DNA of 63,747 bases, filler included, from Ministeria vibrans ATCC 50519 (taxonomy: Eukaryota; Protista; Filasterea), in assembly GCA_943704425.1 (NCBI GenBank). It is 8 parts of 8 records of this genome, joined end to end, with 100 filler letters (N's around TTAATTAATTAA, not from the genome) between each part and the next. Parts side by side here need not be neighbours in the genome. Positions count along the whole stretch, not along the records: positions 12,770 to 41,772 come from CALSCP010000376.1; 7 more parts are not named here. One strand, written 5' to 3'. Below the pieces are notes generated by a model. That model saw only the letters and a list, made by a program, of their open reading frames with translations. It did not search any database and was not told the origin of the DNA. Shown piece by piece: positions 12,861-42,581 of this stretch (positions are counted from its first letter, which is position 1; each line of letters begins with the position of its first letter). Made by a program: the position numbers and the translations under genes.

Positions 12861-15800
12861 CTCGTCTTCCATTCGACGCAACTTGCTGTCACGAATGCGA
12901 TTCACATGATCCTTTTGCAGCACCAAGCGCTTCTCCTCCACCACGTACAGCGGGCGACACACTCGTCCAGCGTCCATGTACCTTTATCATTGAAAAAAAA
13001 AGAAAAGAAAAAATGAGACATTCGAACCGTTATCCGTTTTGTGGTAGAAAGGTACAATCTGATTTCGCGGTTCTGCACGTCGCGCACAATAGACACCTCG
13101 GGTGAAAAATCTCCGCGACGACGACTGCGCATCAAGTCGGTCACGAGCATGTCTGGATCGGCACTGATGCCGTACCAACTGCCGTTCACAAACACTTTGC
13201 TCGCCTACATAACTCATTTAGAAAAACAAATAACAGTGATTATTGGGGGTTAGTCTCACCTGTGTCACCGCTTGTGGATGTGTGTCAAGATCAAGACTAA
13301 CCACGGCAAACTCTTCAAGAAGCTTGATCACCGGGTAGGTTGCCGTGCCCACACTGATGTAGGCCATGAGCGAAAGATTCTTGACCAGACCGCACGCCTG
13401 TCCCTCGGGTGTCTCCGCCGGACAGTTGTGGGTGACAAACCCATTGGATACAAACGTGTGCACATCGCTCACAGTCGTGAGGTCCATCACAACTGGACAT
13501 GAAGCGTGCGATACATTTTCAATGAATTCGACACGGCCATAGAGTGTGCCCGTGTGCACGTCCGCGTCAGCGTCCCTGACAAACTCACTGTACGACATGA
13601 CGGACGTTGTCTTGCCAGGTACCCTTCTCTCGCAGTAGCGCACGTATTCGCCGGCAACGCGCGTTGGATTGGTCTTGCTCTGACACCACGCATAGCCAAT
13701 AAAGTCGACAAAGCGCAATACGTCCGAGTGTGACTGGGCAACAGCGAGTTTGAGGCGTGTCGAGTCCTTCTTCGTGGCGGACATGGTCGTGGTTGTCGCA
13801 ATGTCAAACGTCTCTTGGAGCATCGTCTTGACGTCCAGCAGCAACTGGGTGCTGTCGGGGCCGAGGGAGAGTGTGGGTGGACACATGCGGTCCTCTTTGA
13901 ATGTTAGAGACTTTGCACAGCCGGCAAAGATCGCAGATAGATACGCTGCCTGCACGGCGGGCGTGCCGTGACGCACAAACAAAGGCACACTCGAGTTGAC
14001 GGCCAGTGGCGCCAGGATGCTGTCGAGTGAAACATGATCACTCAACTGTAGCGAAGCAATGGCAGCGCAACGGTCCGCTTCGTCTTGGGGAGTACGTGCG
14101 GCAGTCGGGAAAAGACGAGCCCCCATGAGCTTGGCAATGGTCACAAGACGAGCGTCGTTGGCGGCCAGTGGCTCTGAGTCAAGCACCACGGTGTGCTCAT
14201 TGTCGTTGTTGTTGTTGTTGTTGTTGTATTTTGGGGCGGGCATTGGCAAAACGGCGGTGGGCATAAGAAGAACGCGGTCGCCGACTTTGAGATCACCAGC
14301 AAGATCAAACGAGCCATCGAATGCGGTGCCATGAGGCACGGCAAAGGCATGGTCCTCAGTGGCAATGATGCTGCGGCCCGACGAGGTGCCGATGCGCAAA
14401 ATACGCTTTTGGAACTGTGTCGACTCGAACTGTTGAAAGGCGGCAATACCCGAGGGAGCGCATGTACGGGTGCGCGGATCCACCACAGCAACATGAGGGG
14501 TGATGCGCTGCTGCTGTTGGAGATCGGCAATGCGCACAAGTGAGCCGTCTTGAACAAGGACCGTCGTGTCCGGATGCACACAAACCATGCCCCACTGTGT
14601 GTTGTGCAACTGACGTGGCTTGGCAATCTTTCCACTGCGGTCAATGGGCGAGTTGAGACGACGCAAGTGTGACAGTGTCGACGCAAACGTCAAGCGGTTC
14701 AACACCTGGCTGACACCCGCGGCCGCCTCGTGTGCCTGTAGCAGAATATGAAGTTTTTTTTATTACACCTTCATTCCTCACTTTTTGTTTATAAACGATG
14801 TTTACCTTCGTGTTTTCACCCCAGTTTCCGGTCGCGAGCGAATACTTGAGACCGTCACTGATGGTTTGCAGACGAATGGCCTTCTCGACGCTAAAGTCGG
14901 CACCCCGCTCAATGACCCTGTCGCAGTAGCTGCGCATCTCACCCGTGAGCTTTTTGAAGAGCAGACGAAAGAGAGAGGCGACGAGCGGTCCCGCCATGTC
15001 CAGACGCTTGTTGCCGACGTGATCACGGTCGTCCTGCTGACGGCGTCCCAGCGCACACAACAGAAGGCGGTGCGCCATGTAGCCCAAGAAGTATGCCTAA
15101 GCGCAAAAAAAAAATGCAGATGTAAAAACGAACGACACCAACCTCTTTGTCCGCTACCTTTTTGGCCTCGCAATGGTCGTCGGTACTGACGTGCGGGAGC
15201 ATATCTTTGATAAGCAGCTCGTACGCGTACTTGAGACGCTGAGCTCGCTGTGTACCAGGCTGCAGGGCGCGCTTGGCAATGAAGTCGAGCGCCTGCTGAC
15301 GGTCGTGGATCACACTCGCCTCTGTGAAAATTTCATTGGTTAAGACGCGTCTTTTTTTTCTTTTTTTTTTTTTATTGTCTGTACCTTCGAGAGAGGGACG
15401 CAAGAGATCGACCATTTGCGAGTCGGACATGTCGTAGCAGATGTGCTCCATAATGGTCTGGTCGGGGACAAACGAGAGGGCACGGAAGACAATAGCAATG
15501 GGAATCTCGTCTTTGAGATACGGTAAAGAAGAGCGCAAAAGCGATCCTGACACATTGGTGATGTTGGCCGTCTTGCCGCCCGACAGCATCTTGACGGTAA
15601 GTGCCGACGAGATGCGTGCACCCGTCTCCATACACGAGCGGATCTCGCACACGAACGAGTGCTTAGCCGGCTGCTTCTTCTGAAACACGTACACGTTGTT
15701 GAACGCCATCCGCTCACGCGCAATCAGCACCTAAAGTAAACTAAGTTGAGCAGCATTGCAACAAAATAGTACTACGAATGATTGCACCTTTTCCGAGCCA

Positions 15801-17391: not shown

Positions 17392-20946
<3,555 letters not shown>

Positions 20947-28367: not shown

Positions 28368-31300
28368 TCAAATCCTCATTGACGCACGTTCGTTGACAGA
28401 CGCACCGTAGATCGGATTATTGAACTCCTTGACGGACGATTGATACAGAGCTGCAAGAGTGGATGAAAAAGGAAAAAAAAAATCAGAAACAAGAACAAAA
28501 CCAAAACAATCAATCAAAGCACTTACGATTGTTTTGAGCCTTCCAGCGACTCTTCTCGCGTTCCGCCTCAAACTTAGACCACTCGCGTTTGTCCGCAGCG
28601 CCCGTAATGAGTTTGTAGAGGAGCACACAGAGAGCAGTAAGACCAATGAAGCCACCAAGAACACCGCCAACAACGGGGCCCGTAGGCACCGCTGAGCCGG
28701 CCGTCGTCGACACACAGTCCTCGGCAGTGGTGTTGACAAAGATGGGACACGCAGCCAACTGATCAACGCTGTTGACCATACATGCGCCCGTAGACGCACA
28801 CCAGTTGCACGCGTCACCACCCGTGTTCGTAAAGTTGGCAACAAACGTCGTGTAGTTGACGCTCATGCAGTCGTCACAGCTGGTGAGCACCTCGCACGGG
28901 TTAGGCGGTTGGTCCGGTACATTGAGGTTGGTCGCGCAGCGCTCGCCCTCGTAACCATCCTCACAAACACACACACCGCAGTTGCCGCACACACCGTGGC
29001 CCGAGCAGAGAAGGGCCTCACCCTGAATGGCGCACGAGTCGGCGGCCGTGTTACAGTCGCACACGTCACCGGTCCAGCCGGCAGCACACACACACGCACC
29101 GCACGAACATGTGCCAAAGGGTGCGTTGCACTGGATGCCGTTGTACTTGCGGCAGCTGTTGACACACTCGCACGCGGCGCCACTGTAACCAAACTGGATG
29201 CCATTCTCCGGGTCGGCCTGGTTGCACGAGCACTGACCGCAATCACACGAGCCACGGTTGTTGCACAGCTTGCCCTGCCAGTATGGACACGACGTGTCCT
29301 CGCCACCGCCATCACCCGAGCACTGACACAGCGTGCCGGTGAATCCTTCGTCGCAGTGGCACTGGCCGCACGACCAGTAGCCGTTGGAGCATCCTGGGTT
29401 CGCCGGCAACGTACACTGTCCATGACAGTCAAACGCCACCGAGACGGTCAGGTCGATAAACTCGTCGATTCCCTCAATGCGCACCGAAACGGGCACATTG
29501 GTGACATTTTCAAAGGTGTCGGCGCCCAAGGTCACGGTGAACACAAGCTGGTCCGCGGCCTGTACGTCGTTGTAGATTGCCTCGGGCAGACCCACAGCGG
29601 GGGCGTCGACAAAGCCGGGTCGGGTGATCTCCTTGACAAATCGCTGGTTGCCATTGGCAAAGGTGTAGAGACGCACTTGCGCCTGAATCTCTTGGTAAGC
29701 CGTCTCGATGAGTGCCAGAATGTTGGACGAGTCAGACGAGAGAAAGCCAAACTTGCCAAAGCCCCACTTTGCGAGGAGCTGCACATACGCATTGTAGGTG
29801 GTCGAGCCCGAACTGGTGGTGATGGCGAGAATAGGCACCATGGAACGCTCCTCCATCATGTTCTTGAGGATGCCGGCGGAAGGATAGTCGCGCGTGCGCG
29901 TGTCCTCGTAATACAGCTTATTGTTGGAGTAGGCACCACCTGGGTAGTAAATGGGGTCGGGCTGGTTAAGCGCCAGGTGGCAACGGCCGTCGTAGGGCTC
30001 GGTGAGGCCAATGATGGGACCCTCACCACCGAGGTCGTAATCGGCGTCCGACGCGAAGAAGAGCAGCTTGCGCGACGTGTTGCGCCAGCCAAGCTCGTCG
30101 GTACACGCAATGGACTGCGCGAGAGCGTCGGTCGCCGCCTCGGAGTGATGGTTGTTGCCGAGCGTCGACTGGAGGTCGAGCTGCGCCGAGTAGTAGTCGG
30201 TGTCGTTGGTGAGCGTGACGACGTGTTGGAACGAGTAGTTGGGCTGGCTGGTGTAGGGGCGTGTTGTAAATGGGTCGAGATGTTTCTCGACAAAGCCGCC
30301 AAAGCCGACGCGCCAGTCGTCTGAAATGGCGCCCATGGTGGTCGGAAACTGCTTGGCAATGTTAACCATGTTAGCGAGATCGTTGGCAAAGGAGGCCGAC
30401 AGGTCCATGACGAGGTAGAGGTCGAGAGGCGGGCGTTCGGACAGTTGCACGGTGATAGTAATGTCGAGATCCTGGCCGGGACGTAACAGCGCATGCAACG
30501 ACTCGGGCGAAATTTGATTGTCGAGGGCGCCCAAGAGGGGCTGTGTCTCCTGTGAGACAATGGCCGACTGGAAGTAGACGAAGGAGCCGCCGCCGTCGGA
30601 GCAGTGAGCCAGGCCATTGACCTCGCTGACACAGGTGGGTCCAATGCCCGGCATGTTTTCGCACCAGCCGCAGTTGGGCAGTGCCAGGTTGGTGTTGCAG
30701 TCGTGGCAGTTGGTGAAGTCGACGCAGAGGTCGCCGGCGAGAGACGGAACGGTGTGGCATGACTGCACAAGGGTCGCACCGCCATCGAGCGTCGAATTGG
30801 ATGCGTACTGGGAGGTGGAGCAAGACGAGACGCACGTCGTGCCGTTGACGCCAATAAAGAGCGGGTCGGCGCACAGGTCACAGATGACCGTAAGAGAATC
30901 GTCGGTGTGGCAGCGGGTGCAGTTTTGCACGTCAATTCCACAGGTAATGGTGCAGTTGTCGCCCGCATAGCCCGTCGCACAACTACAGGTGAAGCCCGGT
31001 CCGTACATGTTGTTGCAGGTGCCGCCGTTGCCACATACGACGCCAATGCAGTCGTCAATATCGTCGCAATCGCCAGTCGTGACGTTTACGGCGAAACCGG
31101 TGGCACAGGTGGCACACAGTTCGCCCACATACTCAATTTCGCAGGCAGAGCACTTTTGGTCACTGTTGTTGGTACAGTCAGTGTTGGCCTGGTCACAGTG
31201 GGAAATGGGGGTGCACGCGGTGCAGTTGAGATCGTCGGCAGCGGCACCCACAGGCTCGTATGAACCCGTGCTGCAGTTGCCGAGCGTCTCGAAGTAGTCG

Positions 31301-32789
31301 TAGTCGGGATTAAAGACCATCCAGGCAATGACTTCCGAGGTGTGTGAACCCGAGCCCGAATTCACCGTGAAATCCTCTTCGACACGCCAACGCACCGTGC
31401 TGGGCGTCAGAGCCGAGCCTTGCATGTCGGAGGAGTCTCCACCGTCGTGCCTGAACAGCTGTGACAGCACGGACGGATTCGAGCTGTAGGGTCCTTGTGC
31501 GAACGTGACCGTGTACCATGAGTGTGTCACCGTGTCCGGTGAAATGGCCGCCTCGCCGCGGTAAAAAGTGCCCGTATCGATGGCAATGTAGCCAACCTCT
31601 TCGGCCGGATGGGACGTCCGGGCATTCTTCTTGACATGCGACAACTCGAGACTCCACTGAATCTGCGTCGCCGACGTCGACGCACCAATACGCGGGTGCA
31701 CGAAGGCAGGCGAGTTGGAACTTTGAATCTGACCAATGATAGAGGGTGTGGCCGAGAAAGGAGTCGGGAAAGGGAACGCGACATAGTTGGCGTTCTGGTT
31801 GTTCAGACTCAGAGTGCTCGTCGACGCAACAACCTACGAGAAGAAAGAGGGTGTAAAAGCAAGGCCGGAGGGGGGGGGGGGNNNNNNNNNNGGGGAGGGG
31901 TGCAGTGACAGAGAGTAGTGGCGGGGTGCGGAGTGGCCGTTGGCGACAGGTCGCAATGGCTCGTTTCGGCACTTCTCGCTGAGAGTGGTGCCAACGTCAC
32001 GATCGAGCCCTCACAAGTTCTTGTGGGCAATTGGGCGTGTGGCGTGCATGCCAGCGGCGCATGCGCACGCGAGTGTCGCTGGAGTGTAGCCGACGCAGGC
32101 AGGCGCGGATTGGCGTTGAGAGAGGACACAGAGTGGGCAAGTCGGTGCAAGTGTGTAGACGTCACGGCGAAAAAAGAGCAGTCGTGGGAGAGTGTGTCGA
32201 GGAGAGGGCTGGACGGGCGCTGAGAGACTCGGACGCACGGGGAACATGGCGTGGTCGATCGATGCGGGCAAGGCGCGAGAGGATGGGGCGTGTGGAAGAG
32301 ACAAGGAGGAGAGGAAGAGGAAAGTGGATTTTGAAAGAGAGCAGGAAGAGTGAGCCTCCAGACGCGTCTGAGGGGCTGGGTCATGTCGAGGGAAGCAGAT
32401 ACGTGGGGTTGGAGTATGGGTGGGGCGGCGATAGGCATTGGAGAGGACAAGAGAGAGAGAGAGAGAGAGATGCTGTTCTTTTATATATATATATATTCGA
32501 ATGTTACCGTCGCTGAGTGCGCTTCGGGGGTGGTGAGACGCACGTAGAAGCCTGAGAGGGAGGCGTTGCTCATGCGGGTGGAGACAGGGATGTTGAAGTT
32601 GTTGGTCGTGACGGGGGGGCGGCAGACGACGATGGGGACGACAGTGAAGTTGTGTTTGAAGGACACCCACACGTTGGTGCCGGCCGCCGAGACGTCGCCG
32701 TACTCGCCGACAATCACATTCGCTTTGGGGACACTGCCGCCGGCAAGCGCTACGCTCACCACGGCGCTGAGCAAAACAAGGCCGATCAT
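28368..32789 (-). CDS. Integrin beta subunit with long N-terminal extension
   Basis: Signal peptide; PSI domain; beta-I domain with PLDLYLVMDLSASFANDL (DxSxS, 30391-30405), VGFGGFVEK, GWRNTSRKLLFFASDA, DYPS, LSSDSSNILALI; I-EGF repeats; TM; tail DKREWSKFEAER..W..NNPLY..FNNPIY (two NPxY, formed across intron 28451-28526). Confidence 0.93.
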
Positions 32790-32990
32790 AATAATAAAAA
32801 TGAAAATAATTATTAATATTGATTATAGAGTAATCATTGAATAAAGAAACGAATAAATTTCAGGTGTGTGCAAAAGCAAAAAGTTAAGCGTCGATTCAGA
32901 GAATGAAGAGAAAGAACAGGAAGTATGTACAAATGTGAAATGACAATATGCAAAGGACAAAGACACAAAGAAAGTGAGCGAGAGGGCAAG

Positions 32991-33681
32991 TCAGGGTGGC
33001 TGGCTTGCAAGTGCGTCTTCGATGGCGCGGACCAGAGTGGACACGGCCGCAAGGGCGCCCATGCCCGTGTCGCCGCACGCCAGGCGCTTGCTGACTGGGT
33101 CCACCAGAACCGAGCCACGTCGTCGAATCGTCGCCACGTGTTCGGCCGTCACGGGAGCCTCCCACATGAGTGTGTTGGCGGCGGGAGCGACAATGAGGCG
33201 CTGAGGGTTGCCCCAAGCGCGAATAGTGCATGTCTACACACAATGAGCACACTTGGCAGTTGAGTAGCGCTACGGGCCCTGGACGGCTTACCACAAGATT
33301 GTCGCTGAGGCCCAACGCAACCTTCGCCATCGTGTTGACACTGGCGATCACGAGCATGGCGTCGGCCCAGCGACGCAGCTGCAGCGCAAAGAGAGACAGA
33401 CAACGCTCATTAGGGGTTGTGTGTGCGGCAAGTTCAGCGTCGATTGGTACCTCAATGTGAAGCACTGCGTCGCCCATTTGCGTCCAAGTGCTGTACTCGT
33501 CGGCGTCCGTGTGGTACGCAAGGGCGCCAGCATCGCGAACGGCTGTCGCGTCGACAAAGTGACGAGCCGATTCGGTCACGGCGACCTTCACCTCATGGCC
33601 CTGCGCCACCAACTCACGCGTCAGTTCTGCCGTTTTTACAGCTGCCACGGTTCCGCTGACGCCCAGTAAAACGCGAGGCAT
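32991..33681 (-). CDS. PPCDC: Phosphopantothenoylcysteine decarboxylase (HAL3/CoaC flavoprotein)
   Basis: VLLGVSGTVAAVK, VLHIE-LRRWAD, NTMAKVALGLSDNLV-TCTIRAW, APAANTLMW, KRLACGDTGMGAL; two short introns. Confidence 0.9.
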
Positions 33682-33852
33682 GAAAAGAGACAAGGCTAAA
33701 GGAGAGAAGGTTAAGTTATTCTTTCAAGAGATCAAAAATAAATTAATCAAAATTTTCATTCACAAACACCTCTACGCTAGGTGTCAAAGTTAGCTCCTGT
33801 GTGTCGGCAGTAACCTGGATTTTTGGAACATCGGAAGGGAACCAGAGCGCAC

Positions 33853-35713: not shown

Positions 35714-39911
<4,198 letters not shown>

Positions 39912-40015: not shown

Positions 40016-41703
40016 ATGGCTACAACTTCGAAACGCTCGGCGGCTGCCGCGGCATCTGAGGCTGCGGCAGAGCGAGCGAAAATTCTTGCAAAGAGTCTGG
40101 CGAAATCAGGTTTGGAGAAGCGGAAACGAAACACACTCACCTGCTCACCCCACTGCACTCTCTGCCTCTCTTGCGCGCTCCCATCGTAGGCGAGATCATC
40201 AAGAAGCAGCTGAGTGCCGCGACCAACCCCATGCGCTACCTGGAAGAGTTTCGCGCGCGCAATGCACTTTCGCTTTCCGTCTGCCAAAACGCGTTTCCTC
40301 TCCTCGACGTCCACGGCGTCTCGCGCGCCCGCGTTCACCAGTCCTTGCTGGGCCACTTGAAATCCACATTGCTTGCAAGGGTCACTGAGCTCCCAAGCGC
40401 CAAGTACGGTTTGCACCATCAGTTTTGCAAAACGACTCTCGGACTGAATTGATCTAATTGGTTTCGTTAGACTGGACGAATTGCTGGACAGCTCATTTCC
40501 GTACATCTTCATTCCCGAGCTGAAAGAGATTCCGTTTGCTATCATGGATCATCACCCCAGCATCCCAGTGCGCATTCTCAAGGCTCTCGTCAAGAAACCC
40601 GACGTGATCAAGGTGACGCGACTCAAGTGACTTTGTTCTGTGCTACTTTGACACCCTCGTGGTTGCAGGAACTTCCTTTGAATGCCAAAAGACAACTATG
40701 GAGGCACGATGTGAAGCACTTTGAAGTTGAAGTGATGCCGCTTATTGCGACGGTACAAAATGAAAAAAAGCGGGAGGAGGTTGATTCGTTATCGCGTTTG
40801 TAGTTTGTGTGTGATTCGGATGTGCAGCAGAGCGCACTCAACATGATTTGCGCCAACTCAGTGTCGCCCCGAAAGCGGTACCGATAGTTTTATATATTTT
40901 TATGAAAATATGACACTGAAACGGGAGTGTTTAGACGAGAACACGGATCGATTACTGCGCTAGCAACGATTGTTGCACACTCGAGGACGCTGTATCACAC
41001 GCTGGTGCAGTTGCTGCGAGGTGTGTACTGCAGTGGGGAAGTTCGCATTCTGCAGGGACATGCAGAGGCGCTTCTAAGTGGGATTGAGACGGGTGGGTGT
41101 CGTGTGCGCACTGACACGCTCGGCAGTGGCAGTGAGGGAACGGAAAATGAGCAGCAGGTGACAGTGATTGAATTGGGAAGCGTGGAGCGGGATCTGGTGT
41201 GCGCAGTGCGTGCAGCGGTACTCATGGCATTGCACGATGAAGGGGGTGCGTCTATGGATATAGTGCGCAGTGACGAAGCATACCGTTTTGCATGGTACAC
41301 GTGAATCCATGTTACTCATGTCTGTTTGATTTTAATGCTATTTTTTTTCGTGCGACGTGCTTGTTGTTTAGGTGTCTTAATGCTTGCATTCGCGATGGAA
41401 CTGTTGAAGAAACTCAAATTCAACTGTTGCGTGATTTCTTTGACAATGCCGAAGCAGGTCCAGTCATTGGGTAAGCGAATACAGATTGATTATTGACAAT
41501 CGCAATATTGACCGTCGTTATGTGTGTGTGTGTCTGTATATGTGTGCCTTTTTGTTGCAGTGAAATTGGAATGATTCTGTGCGATCCATTTGCAGCGCAC
41601 ACAATCCACCGGTTTCTATTCAGCATTGTTGTGCAGCTGACTCAGCCGCAGAATCAACTGTTGCCACAGGTCGATGGGTCGCTCGTCTATCTCTCCACTC
41701 TCG
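40016..41703 (+). CDS. NELFB: Negative elongation factor B (COBRA1) homolog, 3' truncated
   Basis: GEIIKKQLSAATNPMRYLEEFRARNAL, FPLLDVHGVSRARVHQSLL, LDELLDSSFPYIFIPELKEI, ELPLNAKRQLW, IGMILCDPF. Confidence 0.82.
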
Positions 41704-42581
41704 TAACACGAAAACCCAAATTACAAATTATACACAGAGAGGAGAGAGAGAAATGAGGGGGAAAGAAAAAAANNNNNNNNNNNNNNNNNNNNNNNNNNNN
41801 NNNNNNNNNNNNNNNNTTAATTAATTAANNNNNNNNNNNNNNNNNNNNNNNNNNNNNNNNNNNNNNNNNNNNATCGAGAGAACAAAGTCAACTTACACGA
41901 AGTGCACGACTGACAGTATTATTACTATGATTATAGGGTAAAAATATAAGCTCTGCAAAACGGAGAATAAATATTTATGTACGTATTAATTATTACTTCT
42001 CTGTTCTCCCAATATGTTACCTCTAGGCTCTAGAGGTTTGGTTGAGTTACAACTCACTTACAAGGGGGTGTGGCTGACTGGCCGTGCTTTTTTAATGATC
42101 CGATCATTAATGCAAGTTAATGCAATAATAAATCTTAATTATTAATTTATTAAATTTTATTTTATTGTTTCTTTTCCTTTTCTGATCTTACTAATATGAA
42201 GCAGACTAGTCGCACAAGGGAGTGACTGTCAGCAACCAGAGACCATGCAAAATTTCAACTGTATATGTCGTTGACTCAATAGTCGAAACGACGTCATCAC
42301 TACAATTGAATGAATTTTGAAGTGACAAGTCCGTGACAAGTTTAAAGGAAGTTCAATGTGTCCCTTGTGACTTTCTTGTGACAACTGGTGAAACGACGAC
42401 GACTGACGAGTTTTCCGGACTGAGTATGAATATATCAATTATAATACAACACACATCGACTTGTCGATTGTGCAACTACCAAGTTCAATTCACTTGATTT
42501 TGATCATTAACAAAACAAATCCGCAAATTTTTTTTCCCTTTTGTCTTTTCAAAAAGAATATATTTTGACGTCACAAGAAAA

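Follow-up and report, generated by a model that had tools for sequence, protein, structure and literature searches.

An integrin beta gene of the filasterean Ministeria vibrans ATCC 50519 (assembly GCA_943704425.1) raises the question of what stands in front of its PSI-like module, and what such an addition might do. The gene lies on contig CALSCP010000376.1, within a stretch of 63,747 nucleotides (nt) made of eight joined parts, hereafter the window. As read from the sequence, it occupies 32789-28368 on the minus strand, in three exons (Table 1) with a predicted product of ∼1223 amino acids (aa). The original prediction placed three lectin-like repeats of ∼90 aa and a Cys-rich spacer ahead of a complete integrin beta, and all the peptide strings quoted for it were found in place on the minus strand. 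We consider it probable, though well short of certain, that this is a real, intact protist gene for a type I membrane integrin beta whose ectodomain is headed by a triplet of H-type-lectin-fold repeats, likely a pseudo-trimeric extra ligand-binding head wired to talin. All searches and models of the gene described below were run on its exons separately.

Fold and relatives of the N-terminal repeats

Repeats 2 and 3 lie at the start of exon 2 and share one open reading frame (ORF) with the integrin part. In an AlphaFold2 model of residues 1-178 of exon 2, for which 25 homologues were used, they form two six-stranded sandwiches; the model has a predicted local distance difference test score (pLDDT) of 87.4 and a predicted template modelling score (pTM) of 0.82. 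When structural comparison was made by VIA-align against 48,161 PDB representatives, the top 11 matches were all H-type lectins or gp53-like fibre tips, with Z-scores of 7.2-9.6; the next match scored 5.8. They comprised LKA1 gp49 (4ru4, Z 9.6), Helix pomatia agglutinin (HPA, 2ccv; Z 9.0, 79/99 residues, 2.4 Å), discoidin I (2w94 residues 158-252, Z 8.7), phi297 gp61 (4ru5, Z 8.4), coral SLL-2 (3wmp, Z 7.8), R-pyocin fibres (6cxb/6cu2, Z 7.2-7.8) and AP22 gp53 (4mtm, Z 7.5). Foldseek returned the same set, with probabilities of 0.75-0.99 and weak E-values, while a family profile run against PDB sequences gave no match at E<=10. Judged by the model, by the VIA-align and Foldseek matches and by homologues that pass PF09458, the H-type-lectin or gp53-like fold originally predicted for the repeats is correct.

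The three repeats were also recognised as members of one sequence family, as had been claimed. A hidden Markov model (HMM) built from homologues matched residues 21-89 of exon 2 at E 1.5e-27 and residues 102-174 at E 1.2e-28; residues 42-90 of exon 1 were matched by the family HMM (E 5e-7) and by a triplet HMM (E 5e-9). Pairwise likeness by BLASTP was weak: repeat 2 matched repeat 3 at E 2e-4, and exon 1 gave no match to the other repeats. Conserved P, R and H..E motifs, together with acidic EEE/EED runs, are common to the repeats and their bacterial relatives.

An exhaustive HMMER search using residues 1-178 of exon 2 returned 952 proteins at E<=1e-3, eight of them at E<=1e-30 (best 6.8e-44); identity of repeats 2 and 3 to the bacterial relatives was 30-42%. 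Each of the seven top relatives scanned (E 1e-31 to 1e-44) exceeded the gathering score of PF09458, at 32-73 bits, and one of the seven also matched Gp53-like_C. In these top relatives the repeats are accompanied by modules of the subtilase, matrixin, FG-GAP, fn3 or dockerin kind. Named relatives include proteins of Roseimaritima ulvae, Myxosarcina and Crocosphaera, and those that could be placed are mostly bacterial surface proteins. The best relative sits between the genes for DNA polymerase I, CoaE and ribosomal protein S20, indicating that it is bacterial. A cluster search with the whole protein led to ordinary integrin clusters, and one with residues 1-180 led to mostly bacterial H_lectin clusters. 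No further copy of the repeats was found elsewhere in the Ministeria genome (29.7 Mb, 2860 contigs searched).

The proposed kinship with tandem repeats from bacterial surface proteins thus held for the closest relatives, but the family extends beyond bacteria. An animal member, a hypothetical protein of Echinococcus granulosus with 1677 aa whose gene lies on a contig of 12.5 Mb, has 18 such repeats. Within the bacteria, a short family member had relatives in three metagenome-assembled genomes of Planctomycetota (marine Pirellulales), and a match in only 5 of 151 sampled Planctomycetota genomes indicates that the family is patchy. Pfam sees the mostly bacterial triplet module only as weak, fragmentary H_lectin matches.

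The remainder of exon 2, with exon 3, encodes an integrin beta. Besides a strong match to the beta-I domain, it holds a metal-ion-dependent adhesion site (MIDAS), DLSAS, at 30391-30405 (exon 2 residues 477-481), and the segments SEAATDA and FFASDAD, which, by eye, we take to be the counterparts of the beta3 E220 and D251 motifs. The PSI-like module scored 22.7 bits against PF01437 (E 1.3e-4), just under the cut-off of 23.1, and 13 bits against PSI_integrin. Four stretches of EGF_2 were reported by Pfam in the integrin part, and the membrane-proximal tail matched Integrin_b_cyt at 31.2 bits (cut-off 23.4, E 1.8e-7). After splicing the tail reads RWKAQNNPLY...NNPIY, with NPLY spanning intron 2, so that the two NPxY motifs claimed for it are both present. 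The description of a complete integrin beta was upheld for the beta-I domain with its DLSAS, the integrin-type EGF modules and the transmembrane helix; for PSI the cysteine pattern is present and the score falls just under the cut-off. It was not confirmed for the beta-tail domain: Pfam gave no match to Integrin_B_tail (PF07965) in the gene; the membrane-proximal Cys-rich module had only a faint PSI-like match (13 bits). In the spacer, one EGF module was found at 30955-31035 (21.7 bits, cut-off 21.5), preceded by DIDDC. This motif resembles the calcium-binding EGF signature, although EGF_CA was not reported by Pfam, and the labels 'TNFR-like' and 'furin-like' previously given to the spacer were without Pfam support.

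Talin is present in the genome, as Talin_middle and I_LWEQ domains on contig C12. Two further integrin beta loci were found, both without lectin-fold repeats, and a 29-nt segment of the published DNA for the Capsaspora integrin beta2 antigen had no occurrence in the genome. Their beta-I domains begin 69-116 residues into the ORFs, which leaves no room for a comparable extension in that exon. FG-GAP genes are numerous. On contig C2390, an FG-GAP gene that is a candidate integrin alpha and a beta paralogue with an ordinary short N-terminus stand head-to-head (37148-38847, minus strand, and 40791-42446, plus strand), and may form a divergently transcribed integrin alpha/beta pair. The kindlin N-terminal domain (Kindlin_2_N, PF18124) was not found in a genome search run without a positive control, nor was the integrin alpha Ig-like domain (Integrin_A_Ig_1, PF08441) in one run without a working control.

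The repeat triplet as a probable ligand-binding head

The members of the fold with solved structures are all homotrimers, with ligand bound at the protomer interfaces (PMC6048534), and the original prediction had proposed that three repeats in tandem could form a single-chain equivalent. The relatives support a unit of three. Among 157 of them, 137 carried 3 (n=52), 6 (n=58), 9 (n=26) or 18 (n=1) repeats, in a recurring order of divergent, A-type and B-type. Counts in multiples of three and a fixed order argue that the three-repeat unit is under selection. A bacterial triplet of 278 aa was modelled with a pLDDT of 90.8 and a pTM of 0.89, indicative of a rigid, compact three-domain body, and every repeat of that model matched the lectin/fibre-tip fold. 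Its whole-length PDB alignments (174-204 residues) were exclusively to engineered single-chain trimers, namely those of adiponectin, C1q, Cbln1 and APRIL-BAFF. In the Ministeria gene, exon 1 provides exactly one further repeat, together with the sole signal peptide.

Taken together, the evidence favours a single-chain pseudo-trimer. In the relatives the triplet is the unit, and a bacterial triplet is predicted to be compact; for the protein encoded here we infer the pseudo-trimer. The repeat counts also suggest that the mostly bacterial repeat family is a widespread single-chain version of the H-type lectin trimer; no description of such a trimer in a large bacterial family was found in the literature searched.

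The ectodomain would then begin with the triplet on a Cys-rich EGF stalk of ∼190 aa and continue with PSI, hybrid and beta-I domains and integrin-type EGF modules, ahead of the transmembrane segment and a tail bearing the two NPxY motifs. The most likely packing of the three repeats is about a pseudo-threefold axis, which would offer up to three inter-repeat pockets at the positions where H-type lectins bind N-acetylgalactosamine (GalNAc)-type sugars; GalNAc binding by these lectins takes place at the trimer interfaces (PMC6048534). Because the N-terminus of the integrin beta chain comes in at PSI, next to the hybrid domain, the stalked triplet would project as a separate arm rather than belong to the alpha/beta head. 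Its likely function is that of a further head for ligand binding, the ligands probably being glycans carried by prey, by substrate or by other cells. Glycan engagement would place force on the same beta chain and pass it through the NPLY/NPIY tail to talin and actin, and in Capsaspora NPxY tails are known to bind talin (PMC6450878).

Non-animal integrins serve to reconstruct the origin of cell-matrix adhesion, and a lectin-fold head would supply a candidate class of ligand, glycans. The gene also amounts to a natural experiment in which a putative second binding module has been added upstream of PSI. As Pfam-based scans miss the repeats here, fusions of this sort in further protist integrins may have escaped notice.

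Alternative explanations and the 5′ end of the gene

Counting against a glycan-binding pseudo-trimer at the head of this integrin are, first, several signals in sequence and structure. The cut-off of Pfam H_lectin (PF09458), 24, was not reached by exon 1, which scored only 13.1-15.2 bits (E 0.11 at 13.1 bits), and repeats 2 and 3 gave no H_lectin match at E<=10. The residues conserved in the family are partly kept, repeat 3 lacking the Arg and repeat 1 the Glu of H..E. The whole-length Z-scores of the bacterial triplet to single-chain trimers were low (2.6-3.7). In addition, the pilin CofB's H-type lectin domain does not bind GalNAc, and the same pocket takes a peptide (PMC6048534).

A possible, if rather unlikely, explanation is that the triplet is lectin-folded but is no glycan receptor, and that it acts, as in CofB, as a binder of protein or peptide, or as a rigid structural cap or spacer. 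The CofB precedent fits this explanation, yet every other solved structural match is a sugar-binding lectin or a polysaccharide-recognising phage or pyocin fibre tip. Repeats 1 and 3 have kept just some of the family-invariant residues, and no sequence-level match to any solved lectin was obtained; the relatives, on the other hand, lie in bacterial surface proteins beside proteases, FG-GAP and dockerin modules, a setting typical of carbohydrate-binding accessory domains.

A more far-reaching version would make the lectin pseudo-trimer the primary ligand head, so that a single beta chain captures glycans on prey or substrate and pulls directly on talin and actin, while the alpha/beta-I ligand site has at most a minor role, the module possibly having been acquired horizontally. 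If true, this would be a 'lectin-integrin', a phagocytic or adhesion receptor derived from an otherwise mostly bacterial module. The MIDAS is intact, which argues that the classical ligand site is functional too, and independence from an alpha chain, raised in the original prediction, is therefore unsupported. We regard this version as doubtful, and prefer a triplet that is additional to the classical head.

The remaining points of this kind concern the 5′ end of the gene. The link between exons 1 and 2 is predicted from sequence, and spans an assembly gap and a long GC-rich intron unlike intron 2. Six strands per repeat are seen in the models, the first lying upstream of the Pfam core. Only ∼18 residues separate the conserved His in repeat 1 (residue 91 of exon 1) from β2 of repeat 2, as compared with 29 from the His of repeat 2 to β2 of repeat 3 and 33-40 in the bacterial triplet. 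The HPA alignment starts at model residue 2, which assigns exon 2 residues 3-10 to the first strand of repeat 2; with these residues so used, repeat 1 has no obvious last strand. By this modelling, the repeat 1/2 junction seems to lack one strand or to have the two repeats share it; either the junction really is this compact, or the gene model lacks a short exon.

The 5′ gene model could on this account be incomplete or wrong, with a short junction exon lying in the gap or an unassembled stretch, or with exon 1 belonging to a separate secreted lectin gene and the first exon of the integrin missing. We judge this unlikely. The repeat 1/2 junction is ∼11 residues, or one strand, shorter than the repeat 2/3 junction, and in 233 homologous units the linker between the first two repeats had a median length of 30 aa and a minimum of 13 aa; exon 1 nevertheless carries exactly the repeat that a triplet needs. 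Intron 1 differs from intron 2 in length and composition (674 nt and 59% GC, compared with 76 nt and 32% GC), but its acceptor, TAG|G, follows a strong pyrimidine tract, and its donor (ACG|GTAACA, phase 0) has the only GT before the stop. A separate exon 1 gene would be an ORF of 102 aa, the frame stopping eight codons past the donor (VTFEYIYI); exon 2, however, lacks both a start codon and a signal peptide, and its frame is shut on the upstream side by an adjoining in-frame TAG (31836-31834).

Read-through of exon 1 past the donor (VTFEYIYI, then the stop) was considered as the source of the missing strand. The gain was only 0.5-2 bits, and in a fixed-register fit of the last strand the read-through scored -17 bits against -5 bits for the spliced sequence; it was rejected.

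The gap of 10 Ns was originally suspected of hiding an exon that completes repeat 1. It does lie in intron 1, at 31882-31891 within a poly-C run, 617 nt past the donor and 48 nt before the acceptor. Since the gap is intronic and the TAG closes the frame of exon 2, no coding frame of the model spans it. Three-frame translation of intron 1 gave no match to the repeat family with the triplet HMM. The original suspicion of a missing piece at the repeat 1/2 junction is legitimate. Frame 0 of the intron has a single stop, soon after the donor. The intron is 42% C, and the long open frames within it are spurious and stem from this composition. Long non-coding tracts that are strand-asymmetric, rich in C/T or in G/A, and carry (CT)n and (TA)n microsatellites are found at 31834-32507 and, for example, at 35770-36769 and 19770-20769, and such tracts yield spurious ORFs of >200 aa in several reading frames.

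Bacterial contamination, or a chimeric assembly that joined a lectin part to a eukaryotic integrin gene, is most improbable: the nearest relatives of the repeats are bacterial and the repeats are absent elsewhere in the genome, but repeats 2 and 3 and the integrin occupy one uninterrupted ORF with no N between them, which together with uniform GC content at third codon positions (GC3, 0.70-0.84 throughout the gene and highest, 0.84, in exon 1) and uniform codon use (correlation of relative codon use between lectin and integrin parts, 0.82) rules it out for this portion, while exon 1 requires a spliceosomal intron and identity to bacterial proteins is only 30-42%.

Table 1. Features of the Ministeria vibrans integrin beta gene, in window coordinates and in order of transcription.
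Feature	Coordinates	Strand	Description
Exon 1	32508..32789	-	ATG, 94 aa, signal-peptide-like N-terminus (∼residues 1-17), most of repeat 1 (WVSF...HSAT)
Intron 1	31834..32507	-	GTAACA...TAG, 674 nt as assembled, C/T-rich
Exon 2	28527..31833	-	1102 codons, 0 stops, 0 N
Lectin-fold repeat 2	31576..31830	-	Exon 2 residues 2-86
Lectin-fold repeat 3	31306..31572	-	Exon 2 residues 88-176; six-strand pattern in model
Cys-rich spacer	30730..31299	-	Exon 2 residues 179-368, ∼190 aa, 29 Cys, one EGF-like module
PSI-like module	30622..30726	-	C-x6-C-x2-C-x8-C-GW-C pattern including CGWC
Integrin beta-I (VWA) domain	29674..30438	-	Pfam Integrin_beta (PF00362), 186.1 bits (cut-off 24.8), E 1.2e-54
Integrin-type EGF stalk	28939..29427	-	EGF_2 (1.2e-8 and 1.9e-11), EGF_integrin 7.9e-5
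Transmembrane helix	28615..28677	-	PVVGGVLGGFIGLTALCVLLY, read from translation
Membrane-proximal cytoplasmic tail	28527..28614	-	KLITGAADKRE...RWKAQNN, to first base of split Pro codon; Integrin_b_cyt
Intron 2	28451..28526	-	GTAAGT...CAG, 76 nt, AT-rich, phase 1, donor AAT C|GTAAGT
Exon 3	28368..28450	-	Finishes NPLY, then QSSVKEF, then NPIY (28407-28418); stop TGA 28368-28370

Two other genes of the window were noted. A flavoprotein-family gene (PF02441), probably phosphopantothenoylcysteine decarboxylase-like, lies at 32896-33693 on the minus strand, and as its frame ends only ∼100 nt upstream of the integrin ATG, the locus is very compact. Further along, a gene for the second-largest subunit of RNA polymerase (Rpb2 domains 2 and 3) at 13218-14705 with 15023-15730, both on the minus strand, carries an intein of ∼395 aa, which interrupts the conserved motif GMV|CPAETPEG. 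The first residue of the intein is Cys (CVHPDTT...), its end is ...VTHN with a Cys next in line, and the insert matched the Pfam families Intein_splicing (E 1e-6) and Hint (E 0.011). To our knowledge, eukaryotic RNA polymerase genes rarely carry nuclear inteins.

Comparison with known integrins and lectins

In limited searches we found no prior description of an integrin beta joined to an H-type-lectin-fold triplet, and standard domain scans miss the triplet. Literature searches that paired integrin with H-type lectin or H_lectin gave unrelated papers only. Word-based protein searches with the whole of exon 2 and with the beta-I region returned only ordinary integrins and one H_lectin protein, none with both. 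Conversely, the integrin beta domain was absent from 159 proteins, including the best 150 of the 952 lectin relatives, save for one integrin that came from the protein search. As additions to ITGB, one survey covering integrins from outside the animals names LamG3, vWD, Ig-like, EGF and cNMP-binding domains; it reports a carbohydrate-binding WSC domain on ITGA, and the word 'lectin' is absent from it (10.1101/2020.04.29.069435).

The integrin part itself is of a familiar kind. It shares with the integrin betas of animals and unicellular Amorphea (Capsaspora ITGB1-4, amoebozoan Type I/II ITGB) the PSI-like module, a MIDAS of the DxSxS form, the integrin-type EGF stalk, a single transmembrane helix, the membrane-proximal KL..D.RE, a Trp before NPLY and the distal NPIY, with talin in the genome. 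It differs from them in ∼445 extra N-terminal residues, made up of the lectin-fold triplet and the EGF-containing Cys-rich stalk, and in the lack of an Integrin_B_tail match.

The repeats are similarly placed between known systems. They resemble the H-type lectins (HPA, 2ccv; the C-terminal domain of discoidin I/II, 2w94; SLL-2, 3wmp) in their predicted six-stranded beta-sandwich, with a root-mean-square deviation of 2.3-2.7 Å over 79-81 residues. Those lectins, however, are homotrimers of separate chains, whereas the Ministeria gene encodes three diverged repeats in one chain, at an identity of 10-16%. The bacterial H_lectin/Gp53-like_C tandems of Planctomycetota and Cyanobacteria, among them an 'H-type lectin domain protein' of Roseimaritima ulvae, belong to the same family and are likewise built of triplets. 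They combine 3-18 repeats with proteases, FG-GAP, fn3, dockerin or YD repeats, whereas here one triplet heads a eukaryotic integrin; its first repeat is more like the A type, which otherwise stands in the middle, than like the type that usually comes first, and the linker between repeats 1 and 2 is short. The tips of phage fibres and tailspikes and of R-pyocins (AP22 gp53, LKA1 gp49, phi297 gp61) have the same fold, and are trimeric and polysaccharide-recognising. These tips are homotrimeric knobs at the C-terminus of their chains; in Ministeria the corresponding repeats stand at the N-terminus of a membrane receptor, within a single chain.

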